The notes beneath the pieces were generated by a model that worked only from the letters and a program-made list of their open reading frames with translations, ran no database searches and had not been told where the DNA came from. Of a DNA stretch of 64,000 nucleotides, positions 5,171 through 60,382 are shown one piece after another. Within the stretch, counting starts at the first letter, position 1; the number at the start of each line of letters is the position of its first letter. The position numbers and the translations under genes are program-made. The stretch lies in the IMG/VR virus record IMGVR_UViG_3300025098_000012, positions 162,699 through 226,698 of that record, one strand, 5' to 3'.

Positions 5171-5196
5171 CCCTAGATACAAAAAAACCCCATCTC
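5171..5196. repeat. 26-bp direct repeat (half terminator) identical to 6501-6526
   Basis: CCCTAGATACAAAAAAACCCCATCTC at both sites, flanking the LAGLIDADG gene and a membrane gene. Confidence 0.9.
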
Positions 5197-6106
5197 ACTC
5201 CACACCAAACTTAACCATCCAACGACCAATCGTACTCGCACCCACATCAAGATACTTGGCAATCCTACGCTGACTCCAACCCTTACTCCTTAAGTCCTCT
5301 AAGATGCCTTTGTCCATCTTCTTCTTGATAGCATTGTTGCGACCTTGAAAACCAAAGTCCAACTTGTAAGACATACAATCGGGTACATGAGGCTTAATGA
5401 TCTCAATGAAACGATCAGCGTTATCACCCTTAAAGTGAAACTCTCCTGCCTCCCCTTTTTTATGTGTCCAGTTAGGAGCTAAACCAAACTTCTCAAAGAT
5501 TAAGTAAGCGTTAGCTCGACTCCCCTGTTTTGCTCCAAAACAAATCTGAGGCCAATGTCCTGCATTACCATCATCGAGATACCACATAGCCAAAGCTAAC
5601 TCATCTACTTGGTCTATAACATCAGACTTAACAACTTTCCAACCCTTATCCCTATCCTCATAGAACAAGTCTCGATACTCATTAAGCATTGGGTGAGCGT
5701 GGGTGCGAAAGATATATGAGGTAAAATCTCGGCTCTTCGCTGTGGTTAACTCACCACTTGACCATTTGCCCCACTTCTCTTGCTTCCACTCAAGATACTC
5801 TTTCTGATTCGGTGCGTGTCGTTCCTCATAGTGTGAAGCGTTCGTTCTAAAGGCAATACGACCGTCACCTAGCATAGAACCAATAAGGATTGATCTTAAC
5901 TCCCCCTCAATCTTTGGTAGCTCAAGACGATCATATTTAGCCACTGTCTCAATCTCATAGCGTAGTCTCCAACTACGGACACGCTTTATGCTTGAGTCAA
6001 CACCCTCAGAAATCAACAAATCGTTAATCTGCTCCTGTGTTAAGTATTGCTTAGTATAGAGGTCTTCAAAACGCTCTTTAGATATAGGGCATGGTATCGC
6101 TCTCAT
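5195..6106 (-). mobile_element. Free-standing LAGLIDADG homing endonuclease with C-terminal HTH
   Basis: Two motifs, ILIGSMLGDG and LAMWYLDDG; terminal WSQRRIAKYLDVGASTIGRW; ATG at 6106 overlaps the upstream stop (ATGA). Confidence 0.85.
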
Positions 6107-6420
6107 AACCAACCACCCCCTAGATCCTCTTTTCCTGTCAGCAACCAATATACTGTCGCAATCATAAAAAGAGTCATACAGATAAGAAAGTACACAAATC
6201 CTACGATAACAAGTACCCCAATAGAGTTCAAGTTGAGATCAGAAAAGACAAAACCCCAAAAACCTTCCCAACTGAAGTAGCCAAGTAGCCCCCCTATGAC
6301 GAATCCTGTTAAACAAGTCATAAAGACAGACAAGTACAGGCTACACAAAGTAAGGAGGAACTTCCCTACCTTATGTACTAGGAAGCATACCCTGTTGAAG
6401 ATGCGTTCAAAAGCGTTCAT
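6103..6420 (-). CDS. Small membrane protein
   Basis: Two to three hydrophobic segments; GAGG RBS; coupled to the endonuclease gene. Confidence 0.65.
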   Translation of the reverse strand: MNAFERIFNRVCFLVHKVGKFLLTLCSLYLSVFMTCLTGFVIGGLLGYFSWEGFWGFVFSDLNLNSIGVLVIVGFVYFLICMTLFMIATVYWLLTGKEDLGGGWL

Positions 6421-6605: not shown

Positions 6606-7484
6606 TTAACGCTGTACAGTAAGACGAGCAAGACCACGAGGGTTGTAAGCTCCGATACCCAAGTTTTCAAAGACACTGAAGCCGATTGTACGAGCTTTAG
6701 GATCGTCAGCAGAAAGGACGGTCAACTCGGTACGAACAGGGATACGACCAAACATCTCTGGCTCACAGCAGACATAAACAGTTCCAACAGGAACAAGTCG
6801 GCTAGTGATGATCTGAGCACCCCAAAGGGTAGCCTGTAGACCAGTCTTGAGAAGTGCCGCTTGGCTCTCGATGTCGAGAATGTCACGACCGAACTTACGG
6901 ATGTCAGCGTAATCACGAGCATTCATGAATACACGAGCAACACGAAGGTCATGACGCTCAATGAGGCTGTATGCGTCAGCAAGAACAGCACCATTAAGAG
7001 GAGCGATAACAGGAATGTCAGCGTTAGTCTGACCTGCAACGCTATCAAATCCGTTAGCCGCAACTGCATCAAGGATAGCGAATACACGCTCGTCCTCAGC
7101 CGCTTGGATTTGAGCACGAGCAAGATCCTGAGCACGCTCGATAAGGTCGAACCTACGCTCTTTGATCTGTGTGAGTGGGATCTCTGGGTTAGAAGCGATC
7201 TCAAACAATGGGAAGATAACCCTGCGTGGCTTGGTGATAGCAAGGATGTTCTCACCCTCTTCACCAACTACGAAAGCAGTCACATCGGGATCTTTGTCGT
7301 AGATAGGTAAAGCACCATCTGGAAGTTGCTCGACTAAGAAAGTCTTACGACCAACAGAGGTGTAATCTCTACGAAGGCGAAGTGGTTGAGTCATTGAAGC
7401 GGCGAGCTTCGCACGACCCTGTGGAGTCTTAATGTAGTCAGAAATGATCTTCTGTTTTACGGCATTATCAACTGTATTACTCAT
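6606..7484 (-). CDS. Major capsid protein (HK97 fold)
   Basis: 292 aa; HK97-like pattern (VVGEEGE, FEIASNPEI, MNARDYADI, LWGAQIITS, ENLGIGAYNP); lies after protease, scaffold and decoration genes. Confidence 0.85.
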   Translation of the reverse strand: MSNTVDNAVKQKIISDYIKTPQGRAKLAASMTQPLRLRRDYTSVGRKTFLVEQLPDGALPIYDKDPDVTAFVVGEEGENILAITKPRRVIFPLFEIASNPEIPLTQIKERRFDLIERAQDLARAQIQAAEDERVFAILDAVAANGFDSVAGQTNADIPVIAPLNGAVLADAYSLIERHDLRVARVFMNARDYADIRKFGRDILDIESQAALLKTGLQATLWGAQIITSRLVPVGTVYVCCEPEMFGRIPVRTELTVLSADDPKARTIGFSVFENLGIGAYNPRGLARLTVQR

Positions 7485-8245: not shown

Positions 8246-9814
8246 TTATCCGAAGAACTTGCTTACATCGGGAGCAGACTCCCAAAGTTTAGAAAGCTCA
8301 TCAGAAGCACTTGAAGCCTCACGAGAGATGTTACCGAGAGTCTTAACAGCCGCTTTACGAGCAGAGGTGCGTGGGCGATAAGAAGCCTTCTTATCAGCCT
8401 TTTCCTCTTTAGCCTCTTCCTCAGTAGCTTCTTCTTCGGTAGCTTCTTCTTCGGTAGCTTCTTCCTCAGTAGCTTCTTCCTCAGTAGCTTCTTCGGTAGA
8501 CTCTTCCTCAGCGTCTTCATCAGCCGCTGTGAAGATTGAAGCGAGGCGAGGGTCCATAGCCATTGCATCTTCTGCGTCCATGTCAAGACCCATGACATCT
8601 TCACCCATGCTCATTGTAGTTTCGACTTCTTCAGCAGTATATCCATACTCTGGATCATTCTGCTCACGAGTGTCATCTGCTTCAAGCTCTGCAAGGAGAG
8701 TTGCCATCTCATTATCAGCAGTAGTGTCCATGTCAGACATATAAGTTGAAAGAGCTTCTGCAAGACGCTCAATCTTTGCTAAACGCTGAGTAGGCTGACC
8801 CTCTGAAGGCTCACTAGCAGGAGCAGTCTCAAGTGCTACAGTGTCGTTCTGACCTTGATAGCCTGTACCAACTTGTACTGCGTTATCAGCGAGTTTACGA
8901 ACCTTGCGAGCAAGACGAGCATTAGCGGCTTTAAGAGTAGCGATTTCTTCTGCGAGAGCTTCGGCTGATGAAGAGTGATCCTCAGCCATCATCATAGCCT
9001 CGTGATCTTCAGCCATCAACATTGCTTCGTGATCTTCAGCTTCAAGATCAGCCATGATTTGTGAAAGCTCATCTTCTGCTTCAAGTTCGTCTGCGAAAGA
9101 CTCACCAAGACCAAGAGCGATTTCATCACGAGAAAGGAAGCCATCCTCATTCATATCAAGATCGTCAAAGATCTCGTCAGAGCCACCCCATTCGTCCATA
9201 GAAATCATGCCATCGCCATCGGTGTCATAAGCGTCAAACATAGAGTGACCCATGTGATCGTCAGCTTCTAGTTCATCACTTGCATTTCCTGGTCCTGTGA
9301 ATTCAAGACCTTCATCATACTCAGTTCCAACTTGTACAGCATTGTCAGCAAGACGAGCAACACGAGCATTAACAGTACGACTAGGAAGATCCATCATGCG
9401 AAGTGCAAGATCCTCGATCTCACGCTGTGAAGCAGTACGACCAAGACGACTTTCAGCGATGCGAATGCACTTAGCCGCTTTACGCTCCATAGCTTTTTTA
9501 AGGTTCTCTTGGCGAAGGTCATCAGTAAGAGCATAATCTTCAACAAGCTCATCGCTTACAGCAGGATGCTCTGGCTCCCAACCATAAGATGCAGGAGCAG
9601 GACCAGAACGGTAAGGTCCTTTACGGACTCCTTCACCGAACTCTGAGTCGAAGCCATACTGATCTACAGAAGGCTGATCGGATGAAGCAGGGTGACCGAA
9701 GTGATCCCAACCAAGATTATCGTATCCTGGGAGGCCAGAGTTTGCTCTGCGATTTCTTCTACGAGCAAGCTCTGCCCTGCGAGACATATTCTTAGAACGA
9801 GAATACCTAGACAT
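8246..9814 (-). CDS. Probable capsid scaffolding protein with an EF-hand pair
   Basis: Very acidic, coiled-coil-like, between protease and capsid genes; DTDGDGMISMDE and DMNEDGFLSRDE loops. Confidence 0.65.
   Translation of the reverse strand: MSRYSRSKNMSRRAELARRRNRRANSGLPGYDNLGWDHFGHPASSDQPSVDQYGFDSEFGEGVRKGPYRSGPAPASYGWEPEHPAVSDELVEDYALTDDLRQENLKKAMERKAAKCIRIAESRLGRTASQREIEDLALRMMDLPSRTVNARVARLADNAVQVGTEYDEGLEFTGPGNASDELEADDHMGHSMFDAYDTDGDGMISMDEWGGSDEIFDDLDMNEDGFLSRDEIALGLGESFADELEAEDELSQIMADLEAEDHEAMLMAEDHEAMMMAEDHSSSAEALAEEIATLKAANARLARKVRKLADNAVQVGTGYQGQNDTVALETAPASEPSEGQPTQRLAKIERLAEALSTYMSDMDTTADNEMATLLAELEADDTREQNDPEYGYTAEEVETTMSMGEDVMGLDMDAEDAMAMDPRLASIFTAADEDAEEESTEEATEEEATEEEATEEEATEEEATEEEAKEEKADKKASYRPRTSARKAAVKTLGNISREASSASDELSKLWESAPDVSKFFG
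8410..8510 (-). repeat. In-frame 15-bp tandem repeat encoding (EEEAT)n
   Basis: Repeated tcagtagcttcttc/tcggtagcttcttc units. Confidence 0.9.
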
Positions 9815-11295: not shown

Positions 11296-14200
11296 TTACC
11301 CCTTAACGATGTCGGAAGGTTTGATGATAAAGAGGCAGGTATAACAAGCGAGCAGTTTCTCACTCTTACCTCCTCTTCTTTTGTAAACAGTATTGCCGAG
11401 TGGAGTTTTACACTTGGGACAACAAGGTTTTTCCTCATTCCGACATTGGCGATAAGTACGATCTTTCTTATACCAATAAATAGCTTGCTTCATGTATCTG
11501 GAGGCAACACGATTAGCTTGCTTTTTGACGGCACGAGAAGTTACAGGAACAGTACCAGCTCCACCTGGTATAGTATCTTGATCGTCAGTATAAATGTTCA
11601 AGTAATCACCCGAAGTATCTACAACAAGATCTTCTACAGGATAGCGTTGCGATCCATGAGGGAACTGCACATCGACCATACCAATTGCAGGGAAGATAGC
11701 TATAACGAGTCCAGACCTTGACGGATTACCACCAAGAAAGGGGTATACACGCATCCCTAGCTCGAACGCTTGGGATCTACGCTGATAGTCAACATATTGT
11801 GTAGATCGTTTTTGCATGATTACAGTGCCTCCACTCTTATAGTAGGTGTCAATAAATGATCTATTAAAATTATTTGCTTGTTTATTTGATGAGGTAGACT
11901 CAATTTCTTGTGTCGCTGTGTCATCAAATAGCTCAGTAAGCCTACTTCTTATGTCTTTGAGCCTCTGTCTCTTAGTCGCACCATCTAAACTTTTCACTTT
12001 TTCTAGTTCTTGCTGTATCTGCTCCCATCTAAACTTTTTCGTGTTATCACTGTAGAGCTGAATACCGTCAATGCTACTCCGAGTTTCTTCAATTCTCCAT
12101 CTTGTCCTAAATTCTTCTCCAGCGGCTTCTCTCTCTTCTTCGGTGTATTCTTTACCAGTTGATAGATCAACACCATCAACGAACACCTCGAAAAACTTAT
12201 CTTTGTTTTCTCTCCAAAAGAGCTTCATTTGCTCTTTGACTTTCTTAGAAGGACCAGAGCTATCACCTTTAGGTTTGTAGTAGCCATCCCCCTTAGACTC
12301 TTTTTCGACAGTATGGAGATTAACGAAACCTCCACTCATGTAATCCCTTAACAGTTTCTTCATGTCATCAGACAATGGGTTAGGACAGGGATCATCTGAG
12401 GGGAGGAGCTTCTTGTCTCCCACACCTGCGGCGTTATTTGTAGGCCCACCAGGACAGTAGTCGTCATCTAATAAATCCAACATATCTCCATAAGGTCCTT
12501 GCTCACCTCCAACTACAGCTTTAAAATCTTCTGTGTCGAGGTTTTCAGTGACCGACTCAATCAAATCTCGTGTCTTACTAGGGTTAGTGCCTTGTTGGGA
12601 GAGCATACTGATGCCTTCTTCCCAAGCCTCTGATCCTGTTTGTCTTGCGAGTTCAAGTAATCGGTCGGGTACTTCGGCATACCCATCAATGACACCCTCA
12701 CTATTTATCATGCGTATTGTATTGAGGGCTGTTTCAGATGCTTTTAAGTTTACGAGCTTACCCTGTAATGATTTCTTTTCTTCATCAGACAGACCTTCCC
12801 CATCATTTTCTAGGAGTGCTTTTGCTTCACCAATCTCCTCTGCGACCCTTCCAACCATAGCATTACGCTGTTCTTCATTCATCTTCTTAAAGCGTCTGCC
12901 TTGAACTCTGCGTACATTCTGTAGGTGCTTCTCTTTATCGTGATCATCCCCATCAGTAGGGAACTCAAGTAGCCCGAACTCTGGATCTTCCACAATACTC
13001 TTTTGTGCATGGGTTGTTGCTAAGTAGCTACCTAGATTTTGTGCGTACTCCTTTTGAACAGCCTCATAGTTTTCTAAGTCTGATTTTAAGGAACTGAGAG
13101 AATCTTCTGCATCTTTCAAAGAATTCTTAAGTTGCTTTAGAGTTTCCTCATCTGTGTCATCGTCAGCTTCCGATAACTTTTGTTGAGCTTTATTCACCTT
13201 GTCGGTGGTTTCCTTAATGTCCTTATTGAGTTGTTCTACTGTAGGAGGAGGTGTGGGGGGCTTTAAATCCTTTGCCTCTTCGTCAATGTAAGACTGTAGA
13301 CCATCGAGTCCTTGATTTCTCATCACTTCTTCGACTTTGAATGCACCGGATCCGTAAGCCTGCACCATTTGTTGAACTTGATCTTCGGTCAACTCATCAA
13401 GTGCATCTACAGTTTCACTTATCCTTTGAATAAATGTGCGAGTGCTCTTTCTAGTTGATGCAAGATCCTTCTTCTCAAGTCCTTTGATTTGTTCCTTGAG
13501 ATCACGCTTCTCTTTATCGCTTAAAGAAGGATCTTCGAGCTTTTTTTCGAGATTCTCTATCTTCTCACTCGTGCCTTTGCTTAACTTATCCCTAAAGGCT
13601 TTCTCAAGGCGATCCTTGATTTCTGCCTTTTGGACATAGCTCGGCTGTTCCAATAAAGGAGCACCTTCAACAAACGGAGGTTCTTCTTTCGGAGGTGTAT
13701 CATCCCCCTTTGCGTCATCCTTTCCCGATTCATTTCTAGGTTTTGGCTCACCCTTACCTTTGCTTTTACCCTTGCCTTTGGGTTCTTCTTCTCCTGTTTG
13801 CTTCTCACGCTCTTTAGCTCTCTCGTCCAAGACATCTTTGGTTTCTTTTACTTCTTCTTCAGTAATGTCGGATGCCTCTTGAACATCAACCTCGACAGCA
13901 TCAATCCCCTCTTCTTCAAGAGATGTGGTGAGCTTTTCAGCGACTCTCTTTTTATAAGGACCTCGCTTTTTGCCTTTATCGGATCTTGTTTTTCTTTTCT
14001 TCTTAGGTGGTGGTTCACCTACTTCTTCCCGAACCTCCTCATGGATGTCCATAAGAAGAGCCATAATGTCTCTCATGGTGCGTTCTTCAACAAGAGACAT
14101 ATCTCTCATATCACGACCATTGTTCATCCTTGAGAGCAGGTCATATTGTTCATCATTGAGAGTAGCGGCTACGGAATAGCTGACATCACTAGAGTCTCCC

Positions 14201-14541
14201 TTAGACCCTCTAGCTTTATCCATAGCTTTGTTAAAGTCTTGGACAGCTTTTGGGTGGGCACGATTATAAGCTGTATTAAACGACAACTCATCACCTGTCA
14301 GCCTACTCTTATACTTACGACTTTTGAGCTTGTCTTTGACCTTCTTAACGATCTTCTGCTCTTTTTTCTGTTTCCTTTTCTGCTCTGGCGTGAGCTTTTG
14401 CTTCTTTCGCTTTTTCTTTTTAGTTGGCTTACGAGATCCGTCCTCACGCTTTTGAGAAGCCGCAACTCGGTGTGCCTCTAAAAGAAGGCGATCTGTTTTC
14501 TCTAGCTCCGTTTGGAGTTCTAGTAGAAGGCGACTAATCAT
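11296..14541 (-). CDS. Large charged virion-associated protein; C-terminal 173 aa probably also a separate gene (11296-11817)
   Basis: 1081-aa ORF; internal late motif at 11852, GGAGG at 11828-11832, ATG at 11817; C-terminal SH3-like segment, RVASRY tag and CxxC zinc ribbon. Confidence 0.7.
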   Translation of the reverse strand: MISRLLLELQTELEKTDRLLLEAHRVAASQKREDGSRKPTKKKKRKKQKLTPEQKRKQKKEQKIVKKVKDKLKSRKYKSRLTGDELSFNTAYNRAHPKAVQDFNKAMDKARGSKGDSSDVSYSVAATLNDEQYDLLSRMNNGRDMRDMSLVEERTMRDIMALLMDIHEEVREEVGEPPPKKKRKTRSDKGKKRGPYKKRVAEKLTTSLEEEGIDAVEVDVQEASDITEEEVKETKDVLDERAKEREKQTGEEEPKGKGKSKGKGEPKPRNESGKDDAKGDDTPPKEEPPFVEGAPLLEQPSYVQKAEIKDRLEKAFRDKLSKGTSEKIENLEKKLEDPSLSDKEKRDLKEQIKGLEKKDLASTRKSTRTFIQRISETVDALDELTEDQVQQMVQAYGSGAFKVEEVMRNQGLDGLQSYIDEEAKDLKPPTPPPTVEQLNKDIKETTDKVNKAQQKLSEADDDTDEETLKQLKNSLKDAEDSLSSLKSDLENYEAVQKEYAQNLGSYLATTHAQKSIVEDPEFGLLEFPTDGDDHDKEKHLQNVRRVQGRRFKKMNEEQRNAMVGRVAEEIGEAKALLENDGEGLSDEEKKSLQGKLVNLKASETALNTIRMINSEGVIDGYAEVPDRLLELARQTGSEAWEEGISMLSQQGTNPSKTRDLIESVTENLDTEDFKAVVGGEQGPYGDMLDLLDDDYCPGGPTNNAAGVGDKKLLPSDDPCPNPLSDDMKKLLRDYMSGGFVNLHTVEKESKGDGYYKPKGDSSGPSKKVKEQMKLFWRENKDKFFEVFVDGVDLSTGKEYTEEEREAAGEEFRTRWRIEETRSSIDGIQLYSDNTKKFRWEQIQQELEKVKSLDGATKRQRLKDIRSRLTELFDDTATQEIESTSSNKQANNFNRSFIDTYYKSGGTVIMQKRSTQYVDYQRRSQAFELGMRVYPFLGGNPSRSGLVIAIFPAIGMVDVQFPHGSQRYPVEDLVVDTSGDYLNIYTDDQDTIPGGAGTVPVTSRAVKKQANRVASRYMKQAIYWYKKDRTYRQCRNEEKPCCPKCKTPLGNTVYKRRGGKSEKLLACYTCLFIIKPSDIVKG

Positions 14542-14547
14542 TGCAGA

Positions 14548-15189
14548 CTACCCTCTCAAGTTAAGGAACTTACGAGCAACACGCTGTGCCATCTTCTCAC
14601 TTCTACGAGAAAGATCGGGATCACCTTTGTCTCCACGACCAACACCTTGTAGATCGGGGTCATCGCTAATTTGTACTCTGTTCTTACGGAGGTCTTTGCG
14701 AGGAGGCTTATTCTTAGGAGATCTCCTAACGAGCTTTTCAACTGCTTCGTCCTCTTTTTCAGCTTGGGTCTTAGTCGCTACTCTCTTGTGAGGACAGATA
14801 TATGAACTTGCCTTACGCTCCATACTCGCCATCTTGCGAACATCAAAGCAATGTCCTGCAAAACTCTTTCTGAGAACTCTAAGTGCTTGAGCGAGGATGA
14901 GGTAAAACCTATGAGCGTGTTCGCTCTCTCTGGTGTCTAGCCAAACAGCTTGGAGCTTTCTAACTTCTTCAGCTTTACCGTCTAAAACATCTACATATTT
15001 AAGCTCTTTATCAAGAGAGACAGCTTCCTCAAAAAGTGCTTCTATGGTGAGGAAATGCTTACGGATGCAGTCTGGACATCTTTTACGAGGTTGGTTAAGA
15101 TGATCTTCGAGTAGGACAATCTGTTTACAGATCTCTCGTAAGTTATATAAGGGACTCATAATCGGCAATAAACCTTGATCGTTGCTCAT
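14548..15189 (-). CDS. Late protein with CPDC motif and RVA tags
   Basis: ATG at 15189 with GAGG RBS; late motif at 15233; RKMAS, RKAS, RVATK and terminal RVARKFL. Confidence 0.7.
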   Translation of the reverse strand: MSNDQGLLPIMSPLYNLREICKQIVLLEDHLNQPRKRCPDCIRKHFLTIEALFEEAVSLDKELKYVDVLDGKAEEVRKLQAVWLDTRESEHAHRFYLILAQALRVLRKSFAGHCFDVRKMASMERKASSYICPHKRVATKTQAEKEDEAVEKLVRRSPKNKPPRKDLRKNRVQISDDPDLQGVGRGDKGDPDLSRRSEKMAQRVARKFLNLRG

Positions 15190-15319
15190 AACTACACCTC
15201 TTTTTTTTGGGATACTAACTACAAGTAGGAAATATAAACAAACTATTAAACTAAGAGAGCGTAACCCCTTATTTATATCTCTATGTAAGAACCACCAAAC
15301 ACTCTTAAAGGAGAACAAC

Positions 15320-18145: not shown

Positions 18146-19579
18146 ATGAATATGCCTACACCACAAGAAGAAAGAAAAATCTCTGCGTTTCAACGCAAAG
18201 CCCTCACAGCTTTTAGGTCGCTTTTGAAAGACCTCAAAAGTTATGGTGCTCAAGCTAAGTCCGAGCATAAAGGTCGAGGACAAGCTGTTATCAATAAGAG
18301 AAAAAGACACATAGTTAAGTCGATTAAGACGCTCCCTCAAGTTCTCACCTTCATGGAGAAGTTTGTCGGATCAGACGAAGTGAGCGATAAAGCATACTCT
18401 TGGAGGAACACTACCCTTTATCTCATTCGTGATCACTTGGCAGGTCAAAAGACGCTAAAAGAGGTGAGCGAGACATTCAAAAAAAACAGCATCCGATCCT
18501 TCAAAGCACTAGAAATCCACAAGAGACAAGCACCTCTTAAGTCAATCATCCCTGTAGAGCTTAGAGCTTACTTACCCGACACAATCACTATTGATGTAGA
18601 CGATGAGGGATATATTAAGACGATCAACGATATGTTCGGCAATAAGACTTACACTTTAGCCGAGAAGATCAAGTCTCAAAAGAAGCTCATCAAAAAGTAC
18701 AACACAATCGTTAAGCTCATTAAAAGGGATCTCAAATCGAGAGATGAGATGACTAAGTTATCTGCAATCATCACTTCAATCATCATGGAAACAGGGATAA
18801 GACCAGGACAGATTGGAAATGGGATTGTAGAAACAGTAGACGACCAAGAAGTTCAAGTTGAAACCTTCGGAGCGATCACGCTGAACACATCTCATGTTAG
18901 CTTTGTGAGGAATAACTTTGCCGAGCTAAGTTTCAGAGGGAAGATGGGAACTGTAAACACAGCGTCCATCTCAAACTCAGCAATCGTCAAAGTGCTGAAA
19001 GATTATGTGGATAATGCTCTTTCATCTGGTTCAGATTACATTTTCATTACGAGTGAAGGTGAAAGGTTCACCTACCAAGACCTCATAAAATACTTTAGGA
19101 CTAACTTTAAGGGATTTAAGATCACTGATTTTAGGAAACTAAGGGCGACACAAGAAGTTTTTGACGGACTCCAAGAAGAAAGAGATTCAATGCTTCGGAG
19201 GATTAAAGAGGTCGCAGAGATGGAGACAGAGGATTTGACTCAGCGTGTTGTTGAGATCGTAGCCGAAACGATCAATAAAGCACACGAGAGGGCACAAGTG
19301 GCTTTGAGCCACGATAGTGGAACAACGACTAAGAAATCGTACATCAACCCCGAAGTTCTACTAAGGTTCTTGAGTACAGCTTCAATGCAAAGCACTCTCA
19401 AAGAGAGCATTACGACAGGTAAGACAAAGCTCCACTTTGACCCTATGATGTTCGTTCGAGAGGCGACTCGAACAGCAGGATTGCGTATGATTTCTGCATC
19501 GGGGAGGACGCTAGAGAGTATAGATACAATCATTGATATGTTAGAGCATATTTTTGATGGTGGTATAGTAGAAGGTTGA
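18146..19579 (+). CDS. DNA topoisomerase IB-like enzyme
   Basis: Catalytic pentad-like motifs GIRPG, FRGKMG, DFRKLRAT, LSH, KKSYINP; late motif at 18111; the start may be 18152. Confidence 0.8.
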   Translation: MNMPTPQEERKISAFQRKALTAFRSLLKDLKSYGAQAKSEHKGRGQAVINKRKRHIVKSIKTLPQVLTFMEKFVGSDEVSDKAYSWRNTTLYLIRDHLAGQKTLKEVSETFKKNSIRSFKALEIHKRQAPLKSIIPVELRAYLPDTITIDVDDEGYIKTINDMFGNKTYTLAEKIKSQKKLIKKYNTIVKLIKRDLKSRDEMTKLSAIITSIIMETGIRPGQIGNGIVETVDDQEVQVETFGAITLNTSHVSFVRNNFAELSFRGKMGTVNTASISNSAIVKVLKDYVDNALSSGSDYIFITSEGERFTYQDLIKYFRTNFKGFKITDFRKLRATQEVFDGLQEERDSMLRRIKEVAEMETEDLTQRVVEIVAETINKAHERAQVALSHDSGTTTKKSYINPEVLLRFLSTASMQSTLKESITTGKTKLHFDPMMFVREATRTAGLRMISASGRTLESIDTIIDMLEHIFDGGIVEG

Positions 19580-23607: not shown

Positions 23608-24156
23608 TTATGGTCGTTTAAGTATAGCTAGGCATAATCCAGATGAAGGGTATTTACGACCTAGTGATGCCCATACTCGTTTAGCATCATTGCTAGTTGA
23701 ACCTGTTTCCATACAACCATCTGGAACAAATATAAAAGGCTGACCTACTTTATTCCAGTAAGTTCTAGCAAAAGTAAGGTACATATCAGTTCCTATTTTC
23801 TTACCTTTGTATTCATCTTTAATTGCAGTATTGTAAACTGAAAGGATAGGGGCATAAGGTCTATCCTTCCAATCATTCTGAACAAGGTGCGGGTATTTGT
23901 TCAAAAGTTTTTGAACATCATTAGAACATTTTAGGCTCTCAACCTGTGATATGTCTTGCCCCATGATAGGGTTTAGTTTTTTTTCATTTAACCCACCTTG
24001 TATTTGACCAATGCGTTTACGACCATGAAAAATGACAAGTTGATAAAAACTCCCAACATTACCCTTAACAGTGTACTTGATCTTTTCATCTCTCAATGGG
24101 TTAGCTATCTCTAATCTCTTTGCATATTTACTAGCTACTCTTTGATATGGTTTCAT
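23608..24156 (-). CDS. GNAT-like acetyltransferase with RVA tag
   Basis: MKPYQRVASKY start; IKDEYKGKKIGTDMY acetyl-CoA-motif-like segment; SNDAKRVWASL; late motif at 24196. Confidence 0.55.
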   Translation of the reverse strand: MKPYQRVASKYAKRLEIANPLRDEKIKYTVKGNVGSFYQLVIFHGRKRIGQIQGGLNEKKLNPIMGQDISQVESLKCSNDVQKLLNKYPHLVQNDWKDRPYAPILSVYNTAIKDEYKGKKIGTDMYLTFARTYWNKVGQPFIFVPDGCMETGSTSNDAKRVWASLGRKYPSSGLCLAILKRP

Positions 24157-24223
24157 CTGTTTATTCCTTATATGCCTAATCATATAAGTATAGTGATAAA
24201 TAAACTATTGAAAGGTTAAATCT

Positions 24224-32893: not shown

Positions 32894-33487
32894 TTATTTT
32901 AGCAGGTCATACTCTTCTTTAGAGATATAAACAGGATATGGGTTAGGTTGAATTAGATGAGCGTTGAACTCAACTCCAAAGTGATCACACACTGTCTCAA
33001 TGGCATCGAGGTTCTTCTGAGTATCTTCCCAAACAGACACGCTCTGAATGTTAGGGTATTTCTTGAGGAGATCAAAGGTTAGTTTAGCCTTATAGCGAGA
33101 TGTAGACCCTGTGCCTGGTTTTAGGTGAACCTCATCAAAGTCCAACCCTTTACCCTTTAATAGCTCGGCTACACGATAACGCATAGCACCGTTGTCATTA
33201 AGGCGACCTGTACACATGATCGCAAGAGTGTCCATGTCAGAGATAGAGCGTTTAGCTTCACCAACAACACCATTAAACCAATAATCCCCACTAGGCTTTT
33301 GAGGGATAAAAGGTTCACTTAAACTAATGGCCTCGTTGAACCAATAACCCATTTTTTTGTTCGACCACCACTCTGGTGGTTCGGGGCTACGGAACAATGT
33401 ATTATCAAAGTCAAAGATATGAAGCTCAAGACTTTCTGAGCTTGTTTTCATATACTTTGTTGCCACTCTCGCAACAAGATTTCTCAT
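32894..33487 (-). CDS. HAD-family phosphatase ('Swiss Army Knife' RNA-repair type) with RVA tag
   Basis: MRNLVARVATKYMKTS, then IFDFDNTLF, CTGR, WED; GAGGAG RBS; late motif at 33528. Confidence 0.7.
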   Translation of the reverse strand: MRNLVARVATKYMKTSSESLELHIFDFDNTLFRSPEPPEWWSNKKMGYWFNEAISLSEPFIPQKPSGDYWFNGVVGEAKRSISDMDTLAIMCTGRLNDNGAMRYRVAELLKGKGLDFDEVHLKPGTGSTSRYKAKLTFDLLKKYPNIQSVSVWEDTQKNLDAIETVCDHFGVEFNAHLIQPNPYPVYISKEEYDLLK

Positions 33488-39198: not shown

Positions 39199-39753
39199 TT
39201 ACTGACCAAAGTCCCAAGGAAGGTCGTACATATCTTGACCCGAACGAGCGTCTTTCCAACCAACTCGTGCTTGGATAGAACCACGAGCAGGAATGATTTC
39301 TCCCTTAGCTAGAAGCTCGTTACTGTATTTAGCTCCGACACCATTAGTAGCAATCGTGATATGTGGGTCATCATTCTTAACAAGTCGAGCTAAAGGACCT
39401 TGAGGCTCAACAAGAACAGCCATACCCTTATCGTCATGTGCGTAGCCCACGATGTTAAGAACAACATTCTTACCGATAAGATCAGCATAAGGCTCAAGGA
39501 TGTTAGACTCAGCACGACCCTCTCTCTTGAGAGCTTTCTTTTCCTTCTTATCAAAGAACTCAATGGTCATGTGGTGAGCGGCTACTTTCCAACCCATAGC
39601 TTCTGGATCAAGACCCGATTGATCTTGGAACCAGTTAAGCAAATCTCTCTTATCAATAACAGCTTCGGCAAACATGACGCTTGCAGGTTTATCTTGGGCG
39701 AGCTTCCTCATGTGTACAGAAGCGACTCTTCGGATCATGCGATTGTAGTTCAT
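39199..39753 (-). CDS. 2H phosphoesterase with RVA tag
   Basis: RRVASVHMRKLA leader; HMTI and HITI motifs; late motif at 39801. Confidence 0.75.
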   Translation of the reverse strand: MNYNRMIRRVASVHMRKLAQDKPASVMFAEAVIDKRDLLNWFQDQSGLDPEAMGWKVAAHHMTIEFFDKKEKKALKREGRAESNILEPYADLIGKNVVLNIVGYAHDDKGMAVLVEPQGPLARLVKNDDPHITIATNGVGAKYSNELLAKGEIIPARGSIQARVGWKDARSGQDMYDLPWDFGQ

Positions 39754-39898
39754 GTTAAACTCCTTTTAGAGATTGGTTAAACGCATATAAACTAGAGTCA
39801 TATAAACAATCTACAAATCCTGTAACCCCTTATCTATGAGATTGTGTGGGAGAGGTATGTAAGCCTTGCCCAAGCCTTACTCCAACAAGGAGATCCAA

Positions 39899-50107: not shown

Positions 50108-50788
50108 TCACTTATTGATAGGGGGGATAAATAAACTATTAACACGCTCGTACTTGATGACCTCATCAACCAAACCAAGCTCAAGACACTTCTTAGGGTT
50201 CATCCAAAGATCACGCTTTAGAAGATCTTTGAGTTGCTTCTTCTTCATGTTGGTGTTCTTGAGGTAAATGGACTCCAACATTTCCATGAGCGAGTCCATA
50301 GACTCTTTCTCATCAGTTAGGTTCTCGTATGTTCCCCATACACCTGTGCTGATTTGGTGGATGAGCATGAAACTATGCTCGGTGATGAAGCGTTTAGTTC
50401 CGACACAAGACATGATAGTCGCCGCTGACGCCGCCGACCCCTCGACATAAGTGAAAACAGGGATGTCCGAGTCTAAGATATGGCTCGCCCCTGCAAGACC
50501 ACTAAAGGCACATCCTCCACCACTATTGATATGAAGGTGGATCGCAGGAGCTTGAGAGAGTCCAAGATCAGTGACCATATTAATGATCTGTTGACCGATG
50601 GACTTGATCGCAATCCCCATCTCCATGACAGACTTCGGAGAGATGCCTTGATAGAGGTAGATGTGATTGTCGCTTACGGTAATCTCACCATAGAAATCTG
50701 CTTGTGCGTTTTTGCGTTGAACATGAGCTTCTTCGTCATCATAAATTCTACGCATAGTGGGTGGGTGGTTAAAGTATTTCATAATCAT
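50108..50788 (-). CDS. clpP: ClpP-like (S14) serine protease
   Basis: LHINSGGG, VEGSAASAATII, FMLIHQ, RDLWMNPKKCLELGLVDEV. Confidence 0.8.
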   Translation of the reverse strand: MIMKYFNHPPTMRRIYDDEEAHVQRKNAQADFYGEITVSDNHIYLYQGISPKSVMEMGIAIKSIGQQIINMVTDLGLSQAPAIHLHINSGGGCAFSGLAGASHILDSDIPVFTYVEGSAASAATIMSCVGTKRFITEHSFMLIHQISTGVWGTYENLTDEKESMDSLMEMLESIYLKNTNMKKKQLKDLLKRDLWMNPKKCLELGLVDEVIKYERVNSLFIPPINK

Positions 50789-51207
50789 GCCCTTTCTCGG
50801 ATTATGTGAAATCCTTCTAGCCAAGCTAGAACAAGAGGTCTAAGAGATTGAGTGGCGAGTGGGGAAAAACACTCTGGCATTTTCCGATGTCCTAAGATAC
50901 AGTGGTCTTTCTTATACGACAGACAATGGTCTTTTTCATCACAGTCTTTGGGTACATCAAGGAGCTTTAGACAGCCTCTAGGCTCTCTAAGGTTTTGATT
51001 CATCAGAGGGGTTGTGAACCCTCTCATTGCTTGGTCGAGTATGTCATGTGAGACTTCGGGGATTAAACGCTCTACAGGTGTTCCTACAAGGTCAGAGAAC
51101 GCACCCCAATTTGTACTCTCATAAGGAAGGATCTTAGCGATCTTAGGGTTATTCCAATGACGATCAGTAAGGGTCATAAAGATTAACCCATCTCTACGGT
51201 ACATCAT
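50785..51207 (-). CDS. Hypothetical Cys-containing protein
   Basis: 140-aa ORF coupled to neighbours. Confidence 0.6.
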   Translation of the reverse strand: MMYRRDGLIFMTLTDRHWNNPKIAKILPYESTNWGAFSDLVGTPVERLIPEVSHDILDQAMRGFTTPLMNQNLREPRGCLKLLDVPKDCDEKDHCLSYKKDHCILGHRKMPECFSPLATQSLRPLVLAWLEGFHIIRERA

Positions 51208-51575: not shown

Positions 51576-51860
51576 TTAATGTTGTCTATGCAGACATCTC
51601 GCCCTAACCTCATTGAGCATAGATTCGATCTTATTAAACTTATCTAAAAATTCTTTATAGGGTCGAAGCACATCTTCATCACTGAGGTTATCGAGCATTT
51701 CAGCGGCATCATCAAAGATTCTTTTAAGATCACGATTTTCACTTAGAAAGTCATGGTTTTCATACTTTTTTCTAAGGTCTACGAGCCTACCTAGATTGTC
51801 ATCTAGGTTTTCTCTCACATCGTGAAACATCTTGGTTTTAGAGACTGCGTTTCTTACCAA
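51576..51860 (-). CDS. Hypothetical protein
   Basis: ORF overlapping the upstream stop; start uncertain. Confidence 0.55.
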   Translation of the reverse strand: MVRNAVSKTKMFHDVRENLDDNLGRLVDLRKKYENHDFLSENRDLKRIFDDAAEMLDNLSDEDVLRPYKEFLDKFNKIESMLNEVRARCLHRQH

Positions 51861-53584
51861 CTTTTTTTTTGATAAGAAGCTCTTCTACGACCACCACTCA
51901 TAGCACCCTCAAGTTTACGGATGAGTTTCTGTAGACCTGCAATGGCTTTACGAGTACGAACTTCAACAGGCTGACGACCTGCACGACCAGTTCCTTGAAT
52001 ACGATCAAGTGCGAGGCGAATGTCGTTCGCAGACTCTTGGGAAAGTTGATCTCGATTAGTGCCGAGTGAACGCTGTGTTGCCATGAGCTGTTGTACAGCT
52101 CGCTCATCAACGATACCGTTATCTTGGAATGAAGCAATCGCCGCACGAACAACAGAAACGGTATCTGTGATCATAGCTTGTGAGTAAGCAATGTCTTGGT
52201 TCTGCCACATTCCAGGATTTGAAGTAAGACCGATTGGATACGAGCCATAGAGAGGACCGCTCTTACGGTGTTCACCTCTCTGTGAATATGCAGAGACATA
52301 ACCCTTCTTGAGCTTAGACTTGAGCTGTTTAACAAAGAAAGCCTGTGCTTCATAAGAGTCCATAAATGATTTATCGGCTCTACGACCCGAAGAACCAAGA
52401 CGACCATAAAGGATTTCTACATCTGATCCGCTAACGACCATCTCGTAGAATTTGCTTTTGTTCTCGGACTCACCGATGAGATAAAGCATACAAGAGGTAG
52501 CCTCTGCCATTGAGCGACCCTCATGATAAGCTGTGCTTGAGCGAACACCTGCGAGTTGTGGCTCACCTGCGGCTTCACGATTCATGCTTGCAGTGCGATT
52601 GAGGTTTGCCTCAAGACGAGCGATCCTCATCTCAAGGTTACGGATTACTTCACTAGCTGATCTTCTCATTTGAGATCCTTTCTTTAGAAGCCTTCTGACT
52701 TCATCTTTAGAGTAAGAGTTGTCGAGCTTACGCTCATTACGATAGATGAGGTGACGCAAACGCTTACGCTCCTCATCATTGAGTGAATCAATGCCTCTAC
52801 GCTGACCTTTATTGATAAGCATAAAGTCATCACGCTCAAGATAGGCATTGGATTTAAGGTCTGCAAGTAGCTTAGATGCTGGAGATGACTGACTAGCAAT
52901 GATTTCTTCAACCACATTCATCTGTCTTTCAGAGAGCTGAATACGATCTTCAGCTTTAGACTTGAGTTGTGCCAAGAAACGATTACGAGGGTCGAGTTCA
53001 AGTGCCTTTTCAATACGGACAAGCTGATTACTTGTCTGATTACCAACCATTTGAGTTTGCATCAGTTTTTCGTCAAGCACTTCAATCTGTCTCTCGGAAA
53101 GCTCTCTACCACCCATAAACTGATCGTAGAGACTTCTGAAAAAACGATTAGTAGGTTGCATCGCAATCGCTTGGTTGAGCTTCGTTAAGATGTCTTGATC
53201 GGGATTCTCAATACGCTCTTCAGTTTCGATTAGGATTTCCTCAACCCTGTAGTGAAGGGGATCTCCTTGTTGAAGCTCATTTAAGATGTCTTTCCACCAA
53301 TCACTATTCGGATTAAGAGCAAGAACTGCTTGAACACGCTCAATGCTCTCTACATCTCTGAACTTACCTGGAAAGTCGATCTTGAGTTGGATGAGTCCAT
53401 CACTGATGGACATATCTCCAAGACTCCTTAACAGAGACACAAGAACATCTGGTCCTTTTTTGTTGAGTTTAACTTCAAAATCGTCAAAGTTAATCATGGC
53501 ATTGTCTCTACGAGACTCCATCTCAAGCATCTCTAGTGCTTCTTCTACTGTGGTATTGTAGAAATATATTTGATTGGCTTTCAT
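51854..53584 (-). CDS. Multidomain late protein: helical repeats + internal MRRSASE leader + WGR domain
   Basis: LSERQ repeats; MRRSASEVIRNLEMRIARLE; SKFYEMVVSGSDVEILYGRLGSSG...QLKSKLKKGY; late motif at 53623. Confidence 0.75.
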   Translation of the reverse strand: MKANQIYFYNTTVEEALEMLEMESRRDNAMINFDDFEVKLNKKGPDVLVSLLRSLGDMSISDGLIQLKIDFPGKFRDVESIERVQAVLALNPNSDWWKDILNELQQGDPLHYRVEEILIETEERIENPDQDILTKLNQAIAMQPTNRFFRSLYDQFMGGRELSERQIEVLDEKLMQTQMVGNQTSNQLVRIEKALELDPRNRFLAQLKSKAEDRIQLSERQMNVVEEIIASQSSPASKLLADLKSNAYLERDDFMLINKGQRRGIDSLNDEERKRLRHLIYRNERKLDNSYSKDEVRRLLKKGSQMRRSASEVIRNLEMRIARLEANLNRTASMNREAAGEPQLAGVRSSTAYHEGRSMAEATSCMLYLIGESENKSKFYEMVVSGSDVEILYGRLGSSGRRADKSFMDSYEAQAFFVKQLKSKLKKGYVSAYSQRGEHRKSGPLYGSYPIGLTSNPGMWQNQDIAYSQAMITDTVSVVRAAIASFQDNGIVDERAVQQLMATQRSLGTNRDQLSQESANDIRLALDRIQGTGRAGRQPVEVRTRKAIAGLQKLIRKLEGAMSGGRRRASYQKKSW

Positions 53585-53649
53585 CACATCTCCTTCGGTT
53601 TGTTTCACAGCAAAGGAGGAGGTATAAATAAACTATAAAAGGTAAAGAT

Positions 53650-58442: not shown

Positions 58443-58519
58443 ACGACATTATACAATAAATAAGGGGTTACAGTTGTAGTTTCTTTATCGCTCTCAATAT
58501 AAAGAAAAAGGAGCTTACT

Positions 58520-60382
58520 ATGCAGAATATAACTAGTAGAATAAGACCACCAAGAGCAGTAGTCGAACAGATCGAAGAATACCTATTAAGCCAAGTCGGG
58601 GTATACGAAACCCTTAATCTAAATGTTAATGTTCCCCCACCTCCAAGAACTCGTGGTTATGTAGAGGACTTAGACTTGAGAGTGGAGATAATTCCTCCTC
58701 ATGCGTCTGAAAAATATAATAGAGTTGAAGCTAAATATGACTCTACGAACTCTGTTCTTTATGTGAACCTCCCCTACTTTGAAAAAAAATATGAGGGAAG
58801 GGAACTAGCAGAAGCTCTTTACAGAGTAGTCGCTCACGAGCTAGTTCATGTATATCAAATCCTTTATACTAGATCACGAGATGGCGATCCGAGATCTGAC
58901 TCTCCAACAGCAGGGCTTCCTGGACTTAGAGAGAGAACCCCACAATATAGACAGGAAACAGGTGAGATACTTGACCATCGTTTAGACGACAATGAGTTTT
59001 ACCCACGCTTAGAGGACACCATCAATGCAATCAACTTTGTAGCGAGAACAAGGCAAGATGAGATAGCGAGTATCATTTCTTATGTTGTAGGTGAGTCAAA
59101 ACGACCAGCGTACCGTTCTAAGCACTTAAGAGAGCCTATGGCATGGCTTGAAGACTTAGGGAAGTACGCACCTAAAAAGTTCCTCAAAGCTGTGAGAAAG
59201 ATCAAGAACGAGTTCCCCGAAACAGCAAAAATGCGTACTGCCGATTTCTTTAGGCAGGTTAGTCCTCCCGATGAGTTAAGTACCTTTAGTAATGGAACAC
59301 CCACAGGTAAAGGAACAGACCTTAAAGACAAAGGTGAAGGCTCTCAAATGCCAAATGGAGATGGAGCTAGGAATATAGGTCGCCCTAGCCCCGACTCCCC
59401 TAACCTTAAATCAAGAAATCTTGATCGCTCTGAGTCTTATGGTCGTAAGCCTGCTGAGGGATTTGATGGAGGTTATGTGCATGATAGTGGTAGCGGTAGT
59501 GCTAGGGTTATCCCTTATGATAGTGGTTTTGCGAACAACTCATCTCCTTTGAGAAAAGCGTCAAAGCGTGTTGCTCACAGATACTTAGATTCATTAAAAG
59601 CACCTTCGATGAAGACATCGGCAAGACCGATACGCATTGATAAAGCTAAGATCAAAGAGATGACTAAGGATGCGATCAAAACCCTTGAGGACATAGTTAA
59701 GAAAACTAAGGAGGAAACCTTATCCAAAGCTATCAAACGCAAGACGAGAGACGGAACTATATTTCTAGGTAGCTACCTAGATTCTGGTTCCTCTATTGAG
59801 ATTCAGATCATGGTCAAAGAAACGCACGAAAATGGGCAGTACATCTACAATCCACAAAGGGGTTTGCATGAGATCGAAATCTATCTTGCAGATAGAACCG
59901 TCAAAGAACTGACTCACCCTTATCTGTATAAAATGTCAATAAGACCAGCGATGGTTAAGCACATATACTCTATTCTCATACATGAGATTACTCATGCCGT
60001 TGAGCGAATCCGATACTTGCAGACTGACGAGGACTTGCTAGGCTTTGGTTTAAATCAAGGATCTAGGTTTGATAAGGCAAAGATCAAGACACGCAAAGAC
60101 AAAGATAAGGTATTAAAGGCGTATTACAATGACCCTAGCGAGGTTAAGGCTTACCTCCAACAGATTGCTGATGAAGTAGAGGAATACCTTAACCAAAAGC
60201 ATGGAGGGCTGTCTAAAGAATCCCTACAGTCTGGTTGGAGAGATTCTTTTGGTTATTACGGTTCTAAGACTTGGGATCAAGTTTCTAAATACCTCACCCC
60301 AAAGAACCAAAAGTATATCAAGAAAGCAGTGCTCTCACATCTCATAGAGACCATAGACTCAAAGGAATCAACCAATGGCTAA
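58520..60382 (+). CDS. Polyprotein-like late protein with two HExxH metallopeptidase-like modules
   Basis: AHELVHVYQ...DDNEFY and IHEITHAVE...DPSEVKAY; RTAD, RKAS, RVAHRYL, KTSA boundaries; late motif at 58476. Confidence 0.75.
   Translation: MQNITSRIRPPRAVVEQIEEYLLSQVGVYETLNLNVNVPPPPRTRGYVEDLDLRVEIIPPHASEKYNRVEAKYDSTNSVLYVNLPYFEKKYEGRELAEALYRVVAHELVHVYQILYTRSRDGDPRSDSPTAGLPGLRERTPQYRQETGEILDHRLDDNEFYPRLEDTINAINFVARTRQDEIASIISYVVGESKRPAYRSKHLREPMAWLEDLGKYAPKKFLKAVRKIKNEFPETAKMRTADFFRQVSPPDELSTFSNGTPTGKGTDLKDKGEGSQMPNGDGARNIGRPSPDSPNLKSRNLDRSESYGRKPAEGFDGGYVHDSGSGSARVIPYDSGFANNSSPLRKASKRVAHRYLDSLKAPSMKTSARPIRIDKAKIKEMTKDAIKTLEDIVKKTKEETLSKAIKRKTRDGTIFLGSYLDSGSSIEIQIMVKETHENGQYIYNPQRGLHEIEIYLADRTVKELTHPYLYKMSIRPAMVKHIYSILIHEITHAVERIRYLQTDEDLLGFGLNQGSRFDKAKIKTRKDKDKVLKAYYNDPSEVKAYLQQIADEVEEYLNQKHGGLSKESLQSGWRDSFGYYGSKTWDQVSKYLTPKNQKYIKKAVLSHLIETIDSKESTNG

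Follow-up and report, generated by a model that had tools for sequence, protein, structure and literature searches.

The final 64 kb of a 226,698-bp IMG/VR contig from an uncultured huge phage (IMGVR_UViG_3300025098_000012, positions 162,699–226,698; 64,000 nucleotides, hereafter the window) encodes a short basic peptide, here called the RVA tag (core consensus RVAxRYL), that recurs in the focal gene at 14548–15189 and in seven further genes. Sequence comparisons indicate that the tag is a clade-specific, portable short linear motif under purifying selection. Our best explanation, which we hold with evenly divided confidence, is that it serves as a capsid-targeting or docking peptide; the tagged proteins would then share a single receptor, presumably located in the prohead, and would reside in virions.

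The RVA tag and its recurrence in the window

Nine tag instances are present in eight genuine genes, each in the frame of a long open reading frame (ORF), and these are the nine strings that a preliminary description of this DNA had listed. Residue positions are given after correction of the gene starts by ribosome-binding sites and upstream stops. On the minus strand, RVARKFL (14563–14583) lies at residues 203–209 of the 213-residue focal protein, in C-terminal position, and RVASRYM (11491–11511) lies at residues 1011–1017 of a 1081-aa protein, at a junction. Three further minus-strand copies are N-terminal: RVASKYA (24121–24141, residues 6–12 of 182) in a GNAT-like gene, RVATKYM (33449–33469, residues 7–13 of 197) in a HAD gene, and RVASVHM (39709–39729, residues 9–15 of 184) in a 2H gene. 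The plus strand carries RVAHRYL twice, at a junction in the gene starting at 58520 (59567–59587, residues 350–356 of 620) and at the C-terminus of the gene starting at 60375 (62292–62312, residues 640–646 of 653), followed by KVAQRYL (62350–62370, residues 9–15, N-terminal) and RVAHLYL (63877–63897, residues 518–524, junction) in the gene starting at 62326. Four copies thus lie at residues 6–15, two within 14 residues of the C-terminus and three at domain junctions, in agreement with the earlier description of a tag at N-termini, C-termini or junctions of unrelated proteins.

Chance recurrence of the tag is excluded. The strict pattern RVAx[RK][YF][LM], as originally proposed, fits five of the nine instances, the remainder being off at one or two positions, and five matches compare with 0.001 expected (maximum of 1 in 1000 per-protein shuffles of the window). 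A loose pattern gave 11 matches versus 0.16 expected under per-protein shuffling. We also derived a 14-column profile from the copies in the window plus a few orthologous ones and scanned every six-frame ORF with it. The nine instances scored 10.7–15.3 bits, with the next best match at 4.5 bits and noise at or below 3. Codon use varies among the copies (CGT, AGA, AGG and CGG for Arg, and all four Val codons), indicating that selection acts on the peptide, and a DNA-level element was ruled out on the same grounds. The three genes at 58520–64000 are paralogous and the two RVAHRYL copies have 18 identical bases in common; the window therefore holds approximately six independent carrier lineages.

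These data support the tag as a protein-level, amphipathic helical mini-module. In an ungapped alignment, position −2 is small or hydrophobic, position 0 is Arg or Lys, and Val at +1 and Ala at +2 are invariant, followed by Arg/Lys at +4, Tyr/Phe/His at +5, Leu/Met at +6 and a usually hydrophobic residue at +9. The helix of ~14 residues has one hydrophobic and one basic face, a net charge of +1 to +4 and a mean hydrophobic moment of 0.57 versus 0.27 for background 14-mers (top 3%). The amphipathic helix anticipated from the sequence is borne out by these values and by a helix in the AlphaFold model of the focal protein. The linkers flanking the other tag copies are rich in Pro, Gly, Ser and Lys.

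Across the window ORFs, the profile found no tag on the clamp loader, helicases, ribonucleotide reductase (RNR), SbcCD-like, SNF2, ClpP-like, capsid or protease proteins, and 10 further kb of the source genome (L059), which extended the examined part to 74 kb, held none either. The recognised replication and nucleotide-metabolism proteins are tagless. A sliding-clamp-binding motif was dropped as the identity of the tag because no replication protein bears it. As first described, the tag is distinct from the MRRSASE leader of other window proteins, none of which scores with the tag profile. The string RVARVFM (6924–6944) in the major head protein was ruled out as a tag or mimic; it represents this lineage's version of a conserved capsid-fold segment, which Bacillus phage G and Tunturiibacter phage Tunturi_5 have without the tag consensus.

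Tagged proteins, their relatives and their genomic setting

The focal protein (14548–15189, minus strand, 213 aa, ATG at 15189, with start and ribosome-binding site checked) has a conserved four-helix bundle as its N-domain (residues 13–114), with a CPDC motif and conserved His and Glu. AlphaFold2 modelled the bundle with a predicted local distance difference test score of 87–97, the highly charged tail with 54–66 and a terminal helix (residues 196–212) with ~74; the tag lies within this helix, past the low-confidence tail. A degenerate second tag, RKASSYI (14797–14817, minus strand, residues 125–131), is found at the bundle/tail junction. Our search returned 509 homologues at E ≤ 0.001, all unnamed, on contigs of up to ~375 kb, and orthologues at 55–60% identity retain the C-terminal tag (RIALKHL, RVARSYL, RIVARYL, RVVDRYL). 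At a profile score of at least 6, the tag is C-terminal in 47 of 120 homologues and at the bundle/tail junction in 13, with 4 counted in both groups; the other 64 have none. Some homologues show a perfect tag at the RKASSYI site (e.g., RVASAYM and RVAHQYM), and in 138-aa homologues the bundle is followed directly by the tag. The focal family was absent from all GenBank phages except LR745208.1, a 485-kb unannotated "uncultured phage" that is also the sole DNA-level GenBank relative of the window phage.

The conserved CxxC, His and Glu of the bundle suggest a metal site. Foldseek against the PDB returned generic helical bundles only (best E 0.06). Significant Foldseek matches came from predicted proteins of giant eukaryotic viruses, with 46% identity to Fadolivirus (E 7e-7), 39% to Yasminevirus and 34% to Tetraselmis virus 1. 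The focal bundle qualifies as a candidate receptor for the tag only through its analogy to bundles that bind helices, and its significant matches to giant virus proteins suggest that the focal protein is rather another cargo with its own biochemical function.

The 1081-aa protein (11296–14541, minus strand) is coiled-coil-rich and belongs to the head operon. Its tag follows a Pro/Gly/Thr linker and separates a conserved beta-rich block from a C-terminal zinc ribbon, and the family retains the tag down to ~30% identity behind a variable linker (RVASAYM, TVASKHV, RVASRHM, RVASLYL), with one orthologue terminating right past it. We ruled out this protein as the portal, as hhalign against the phage G portal gave a probability of 0.4 and a PDB profile search was empty.

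Three carriers are small enzymes or enzyme-like proteins. All ten best named Atlas matches of the GNAT-like acetyltransferase (23608–24156, minus strand, 182 aa; Atlas feature scores 0.97 and 0.94) are GNAT, and in the relative P0125 a homologous domain with the tag in front is fused behind an HExxH module. The HAD_SAK_1 phosphatase (32894–33487, minus strand, 197 aa; Pfam 5.9e-19) has its catalytic DFDNT motif from residue 26, and homologues down to ~50% identity begin with the tag, ~12 residues ahead of the catalytic DxDxT. This family illustrates the modularity of the tag most clearly: P0246 has a C-terminal tag instead of the N-terminal one, the HAD-CPD fusion P0247 has its tag where the two domains meet, and no tag is present in the most distant members (40% identity). 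The 2H phosphoesterase-like protein (39199–39753, minus strand, 184 aa) has two HxTx motifs and a tRNA_lig_CPD match of 9.3e-5, slightly short of the Pfam cut-off; its orthologue (L021:7505-8242) passes that cut-off (CPD, 4e-6) and carries the same N-terminal tag.

The plus-strand carriers are the HExxH paralogues: the 58520 gene (58520–60382, 620 aa) with two HExxH modules, the 60375 gene (60375–62336, 653 aa) with HExxH and an extra C-terminal domain, and the 62326 gene (62326–64000, ATG at 62326), which runs past the window end. H148, E149, H152 and downstream Glu residues of the module are invariant in 11 sequences, and its model consists of four strands followed by a long HExxH helix. The MPTase assignment of these carriers is based on the invariant HExxH only. 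Pfam gave no match on the HExxH modules, MPTase-PolyVal included, and Foldseek against the PDB gave nothing significant, the best related match being the SPRTN domain (probability 0.30). PHROGs, the ESM Atlas and PDB sequence searches yielded nothing informative on the focal protein, the 1081-aa protein, the protease or the HExxH proteins. In the 58520 gene, the tag lies in a linker on the N-terminal side of HExxH module 2, whose counterpart in LR745208 is a free-standing protein with an N-terminal tag. A tag cassette of ~20 residues is present or absent between the same pair of flanks in the HExxH family (absent from P0140 and P0141). The 58520 gene has strongly mosaic homologues, in which PAP2, GNAT and ferritin-like parts are added.

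Two other features of these genes adjoin the tag. Directly upstream of it, residues 239–350 of the 58520 protein (59234–59569) form a 110-aa low-complexity module with conserved NIGRPSPDSPNLK and GYVHDSGSGSARVIPYDSGF stretches. This is a second mobile module, found at 52–77% identity across more than 50 otherwise different metagenomic proteins in N-terminal, C-terminal or internal position. The C-terminal domain of the 60375 protein (61791–62336), just before the tag, may be ADP-ribosyltransferase-like, with a weak, sub-threshold Tox-ART-HYD1 match around YHYT (E 0.14).

The tag pattern is replicated in LR745208, which we read whole (597 called genes; 55% GC versus 43% in the window). Genes were called by a longest-ORF rule, and because such calls are crude, some N-terminal distances are approximate. 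The core pattern [VI]A.[RK][FYH][LMI] occurs 17 times versus 1.96 expected (maximum of 8 in 200 shuffles), 11 of these matches lie within 30 residues of a terminus versus 0.385 expected (maximum of 2), and profile matches of at least 5 bits number 8 versus 0.5 expected. Tagged LR745208 proteins include an ART-PolyVal ADP-ribosyltransferase (9e-12), a 2H enzyme (2_5_RNA_ligase2, 4.7e-13) and a fusion of HAD with topoisomerase IB (TopoIB) encoded inside the head operon. C39-like peptidases with a C-terminal tag were found in two distant phages (C39_2, 4.5e-6). At the same head-operon position, L026 (576–8177) encodes a 2534-aa protein in which a PolyA_pol-type nucleotidyltransferase (PF01743) and a TopoIB core are joined to a focal-type charged tail, and this is a bona fide polyvalent-type giant protein.

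Orthologues keep the tag at 30–55% identity, and the flanking linkers vary. As the HExxH and P0125 rearrangements show, the tag and its domain behave as one shuffled unit, and most internal tags are the N-terminal tags of downstream modules. No tags occur in the 40 kb surrounding the capsid gene of phage G or of Tunturi_5, which served as negative controls. This result, together with the absence of the focal family elsewhere in GenBank phages, indicates that the tag system is clade-specific.

Two tag carriers open the head operon, ahead of the prohead protease, a scaffold candidate, a decoration-like gene and the capsid gene. All genes of this operon are on the minus strand. The focal gene (15189–14548) comes first, and the gene for the 1081-aa protein (14541–11296) is directly upstream of the prohead protease gene (11292–9853, phrog_18299). 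A 522-aa EF-hand protein (9814–8246) is encoded between the protease and the decoration-like gene, a 197-aa protein (8100–7507) before the capsid gene, and the HK97-type capsid protein (7484–6606, phrog_2522) comes last in the listed operon. This major head protein has 89% identity to its LR745208 counterpart, 46% to that of Tunturi_5 and 38% to that of phage G, and the head genes are phage-G-like, unlike T4. The remainder of the window codes for replication and nucleotide-metabolism proteins, including clamp-loader subunits, SbcC-like and Metallophos proteins, several helicases, SNF2 and both RNR subunits, as well as a topoisomerase-IB-like protein, a ClpP-like protein and a WGR protein. The carriers had been described as late proteins, a term suggestive of structural proteins; most of them are enzymes of a host-takeover type (HAD, 2H, GNAT-like and HExxH).

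Most tagged transcription units also have an upstream motif in common. With up to 2 mismatches, TAGTTTATTTAT occurs 29 times in the window versus 7.9 expected, nearly always in intergenic DNA, and it lies 31–48 nt upstream of four of the five tagged units (the focal gene, the GNAT-like gene, the 2H gene and the 58520 operon). The HAD gene is preceded by a 3-mismatch version only, and the earlier statement that tagged genes always stand under the late motif thus holds for four units of five. At the focal gene, the late-type promoter-like motif reads TAGTTTGTTTAT (15234–15245, minus strand, 44 nt upstream), with equivalent sites at 24196–24207 (minus), 39802–39813 (minus) and 58477–58488 (plus). 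TAGTTTATTTAT is also found ahead of the decoration/capsid operon, the topoisomerase-like gene and the MRRSASE-leader genes.

Proposed capsid targeting and competing roles of the tag

If the tag is a capsid-targeting or docking peptide, it would be held on a flexible linker that makes the N-terminus, the C-terminus or a domain junction usable, and it would bind one common partner within the assembling prohead. Unrelated enzymes and the two head-operon proteins would thereby be co-packaged, and the packaged carriers would later be delivered to the host along with the DNA. In function, the tag would correspond to the T4 capsid targeting sequence (CTS) or to an encapsulin cargo-loading peptide. 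That it works from either protein end points to the binding of one common partner, and four considerations favour a prohead role: the place of carriers in the head operon, the promoter motif held in common, a repertoire resembling that of injected effectors, and the T4 precedent.

Several observations weigh against this role. The RNA-repair-type carriers may just as well work in the cytoplasm of the cell that makes the phage, and neither Pfam nor Foldseek confirmed the HExxH modules as zincins. The label "late" for TAGTTTATTTAT is itself inferred from its position before the decoration/capsid operon. No consistent protease cleavage motif, including a Glu-type site, is shared by the sequences beside the tags. 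Phage G and Tunturi_5 have a related capsid (38–46% identity) and protease, yet no tags in the regions searched, which makes the conserved capsid core by itself an improbable tag receptor.

The tag may instead dock enzymes (HAD, 2H, GNAT, peptidases and TopoIB) onto a cytoplasmic hub, where one scaffold would hold together non-covalently an assembly that relatives encode as a single giant fusion, without head packaging; we consider this the main rival, though a rather improbable one. Relatives do fuse the same domains (HAD-CPD in P0247, HAD-TopoIB in LR745208 and nucleotidyltransferase-TopoIB in L026), HAD_SAK_1 and CPD are, by their Pfam names, parts of RNA-repair toolkits working as assemblies, and the tag is position-independent and sits on linkers. 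However, a hub leaves unexplained why two carriers head the morphogenesis operon and why the tagged units are linked to the capsid operon by a promoter motif, and the ADP-ribosyltransferase, GNAT and peptidases have no obvious reason to form one complex. Hub docking is also compatible with packaging, as the complex itself could be packaged. A broader version of the packaging role, in which a single portable peptide would serve the whole clade as the general signal for loading a non-covalent "polyvalent" payload that is injected with the genome, seems to us clearly improbable. Under such a scheme, any enzyme gaining the 14-residue helix at either end would be recruited to the common receptor, and multiply tagged proteins (the focal family and the 62326 gene) would cross-link an internal protein body. 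In its boldest form, the focal bundle would itself be the tag receptor, adding the helix as FAT and talin bundles do with LD motifs, and the focal protein would polymerise head-to-tail via its own tags.

Proteolysis offers another possible use of the peptide, as a degron for the phage ClpP-like protease (50108–50824) with a host unfoldase, or as a site at which the prohead protease docks or cuts to separate fused modules. The phage encodes both a ClpP-like protein (9.6e-26) and a prohead protease, known Clp degrons are located at N- or C-termini, and the internal tags are located exactly at module junctions. On the other side, internal tags would be unfit as terminal degrons; a destabilising signal conserved over a long time on enzymes and duplicated in the focal family would be unexpected, and the tags have no common cleavage motif beside them. 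Overall, we rate this use as clearly improbable. A generic membrane-targeting amphipathic helix of the MinD or FtsA type would fit a basic, amphipathic peptide with a high hydrophobic moment at protein ends, but unrelated carriers and distant phages all keep Val-Ala without change and Arg and Tyr/Phe almost without change. Such invariance points to a specific protein groove, and membrane-targeting helices are not known to conserve their sequence between unrelated proteins, which makes this type of helix highly improbable. Chance recurrence, or a functionless remnant of paralogy, could draw on the three paralogous carriers and the 18 bases shared by two of their tags. Its probability is next to negligible given the excess of strict matches over the shuffled expectation, the bimodal profile scores, the replication in LR745208, the orthologues that keep the tag while it switches termini, and the unrelated folds of the other carriers.

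Capsid targeting, our preferred role for the tag, has its closest precedent in T4. In T4, the CTS occupies N-termini only and the prohead protease cuts it off at an L/I-x-E site; T4 Alt is an ADP-ribosyltransferase carrying it. Like the CTS of IPI-III and Alt, the RVA tag is a short peptide common to otherwise unrelated proteins of one phage, and both systems have an ADP-ribosyltransferase among their carriers. In contrast, the RVA tag also occurs in C-terminal and junctional positions, has no consistent adjacent cleavage motif and bears no sequence similarity to the T4 CTS. The diverse defence-countering internal proteins of T4 share only a CTS, which directs them into the prohead core (PMC3012670). 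The tag also resembles encapsulin and microcompartment peptides, which are likewise short conserved peptides or amphipathic helices that a flexible linker connects to unrelated cargo enzymes, whether at one of their ends or between domains. In encapsulins, such peptides attach to the interior of a shell with the HK97 fold, and the capsid protein here (phrog_2522) is of the HK97 type. Unlike the Gly/Ser/Leu-rich consensus of encapsulin peptides, the RVAxRYL core is basic, and the container would be a DNA-filled phage head.

The carrier repertoire recalls polyvalent proteins, mosaic multi-effector proteins of phages and conjugative elements for which packaging in capsids and injection along with the DNA have been predicted (Iyer et al. 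2017, PMC5512222; PMC7824862). Both sets include ART-PolyVal, 2H, GNAT and HExxH peptidase-type modules and cysteine peptidases, and both are mosaic and rapidly shuffled (PMC5512222). Polyvalent proteins have 2–15 effector domains per polypeptide (PMC5512222). On this point the proteins considered here are divided: the 58520 gene (two HExxH), P0125, P0148, P0247 and the 2534-aa L026 protein have more than one such domain, and the HAD, 2H and GNAT-like carriers of the window are single-domain proteins that share a peptide instead of one polypeptide. A further parallel, by analogy only, is a short motif that flags polymorphic effectors, as MIX does on type VI effectors, with a different machine, sequence and position rules. 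MIX is an N-terminal marker motif of secreted type VI effectors for one delivery machine.

If the tag does target proteins to the capsid, the injected or packaged effector set of a large clade of uncultured huge phages would be readable from sequence. On infecting a cell, such phages may then bring along RNA-repair-type enzymes, an acetyltransferase, an ADP-ribosyltransferase and peptidases. The tag would also provide a compact, position-independent peptide for loading foreign proteins into capsids, and a T4-style targeting peptide and a giant fused polyvalent protein would be interchangeable solutions in one lineage.

Other elements of the window

A second intergenic element, ATAAGGGGTTAC (extended form TATAGATAAGGGGTTAC), occurs in seven exact copies at 2819, 15261, 15608, 39106, 39822, 58177 and 58460. 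The copies lie mostly between divergent genes, in either orientation, 29–72 nt from a start codon, and the element is a second promoter- or operator-like element beside TAGTTTATTTAT. It was considered as the late motif of the preliminary description and rejected, being a separate element of divergent intergenic regions. The MRRSASExIRNLExRIARLE leader is present on six ORFs (starts at 2379, 5103, 22979, 50074, 52669 and 56447), one copy being inside the WGR-domain ORF at 51854–53608. Four of these ORFs have ~75 nt of conserved upstream DNA in common, TAGTTTATTTAT included.

Within the head operon, the 522-aa protein (8246–9814) contains an EF-hand calcium-binding loop (1.7e-9) and has a C-terminal motif, SKLWESAPDVSKFFG, that L011 and LR745208 also keep; the protein may be the scaffold and would then carry a terminal motif of its own. 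A LAGLIDADG homing endonuclease gene (5195–6148) adjoins the capsid gene.

The topoisomerase-IB-like protein (18146–19579; Pfam 8.6e-12) is encoded under the late-type motif. In LR745208 and L026, the TopoIB domain is fused to HAD or a nucleotidyltransferase and then to a focal-type charged segment, within the head operon. Near the N-terminus of the window protein, LTAFRSLL (residues ~21–28) resembles the LR745208 tag variant KVAFRHLL and is possibly a divergent tenth tag.

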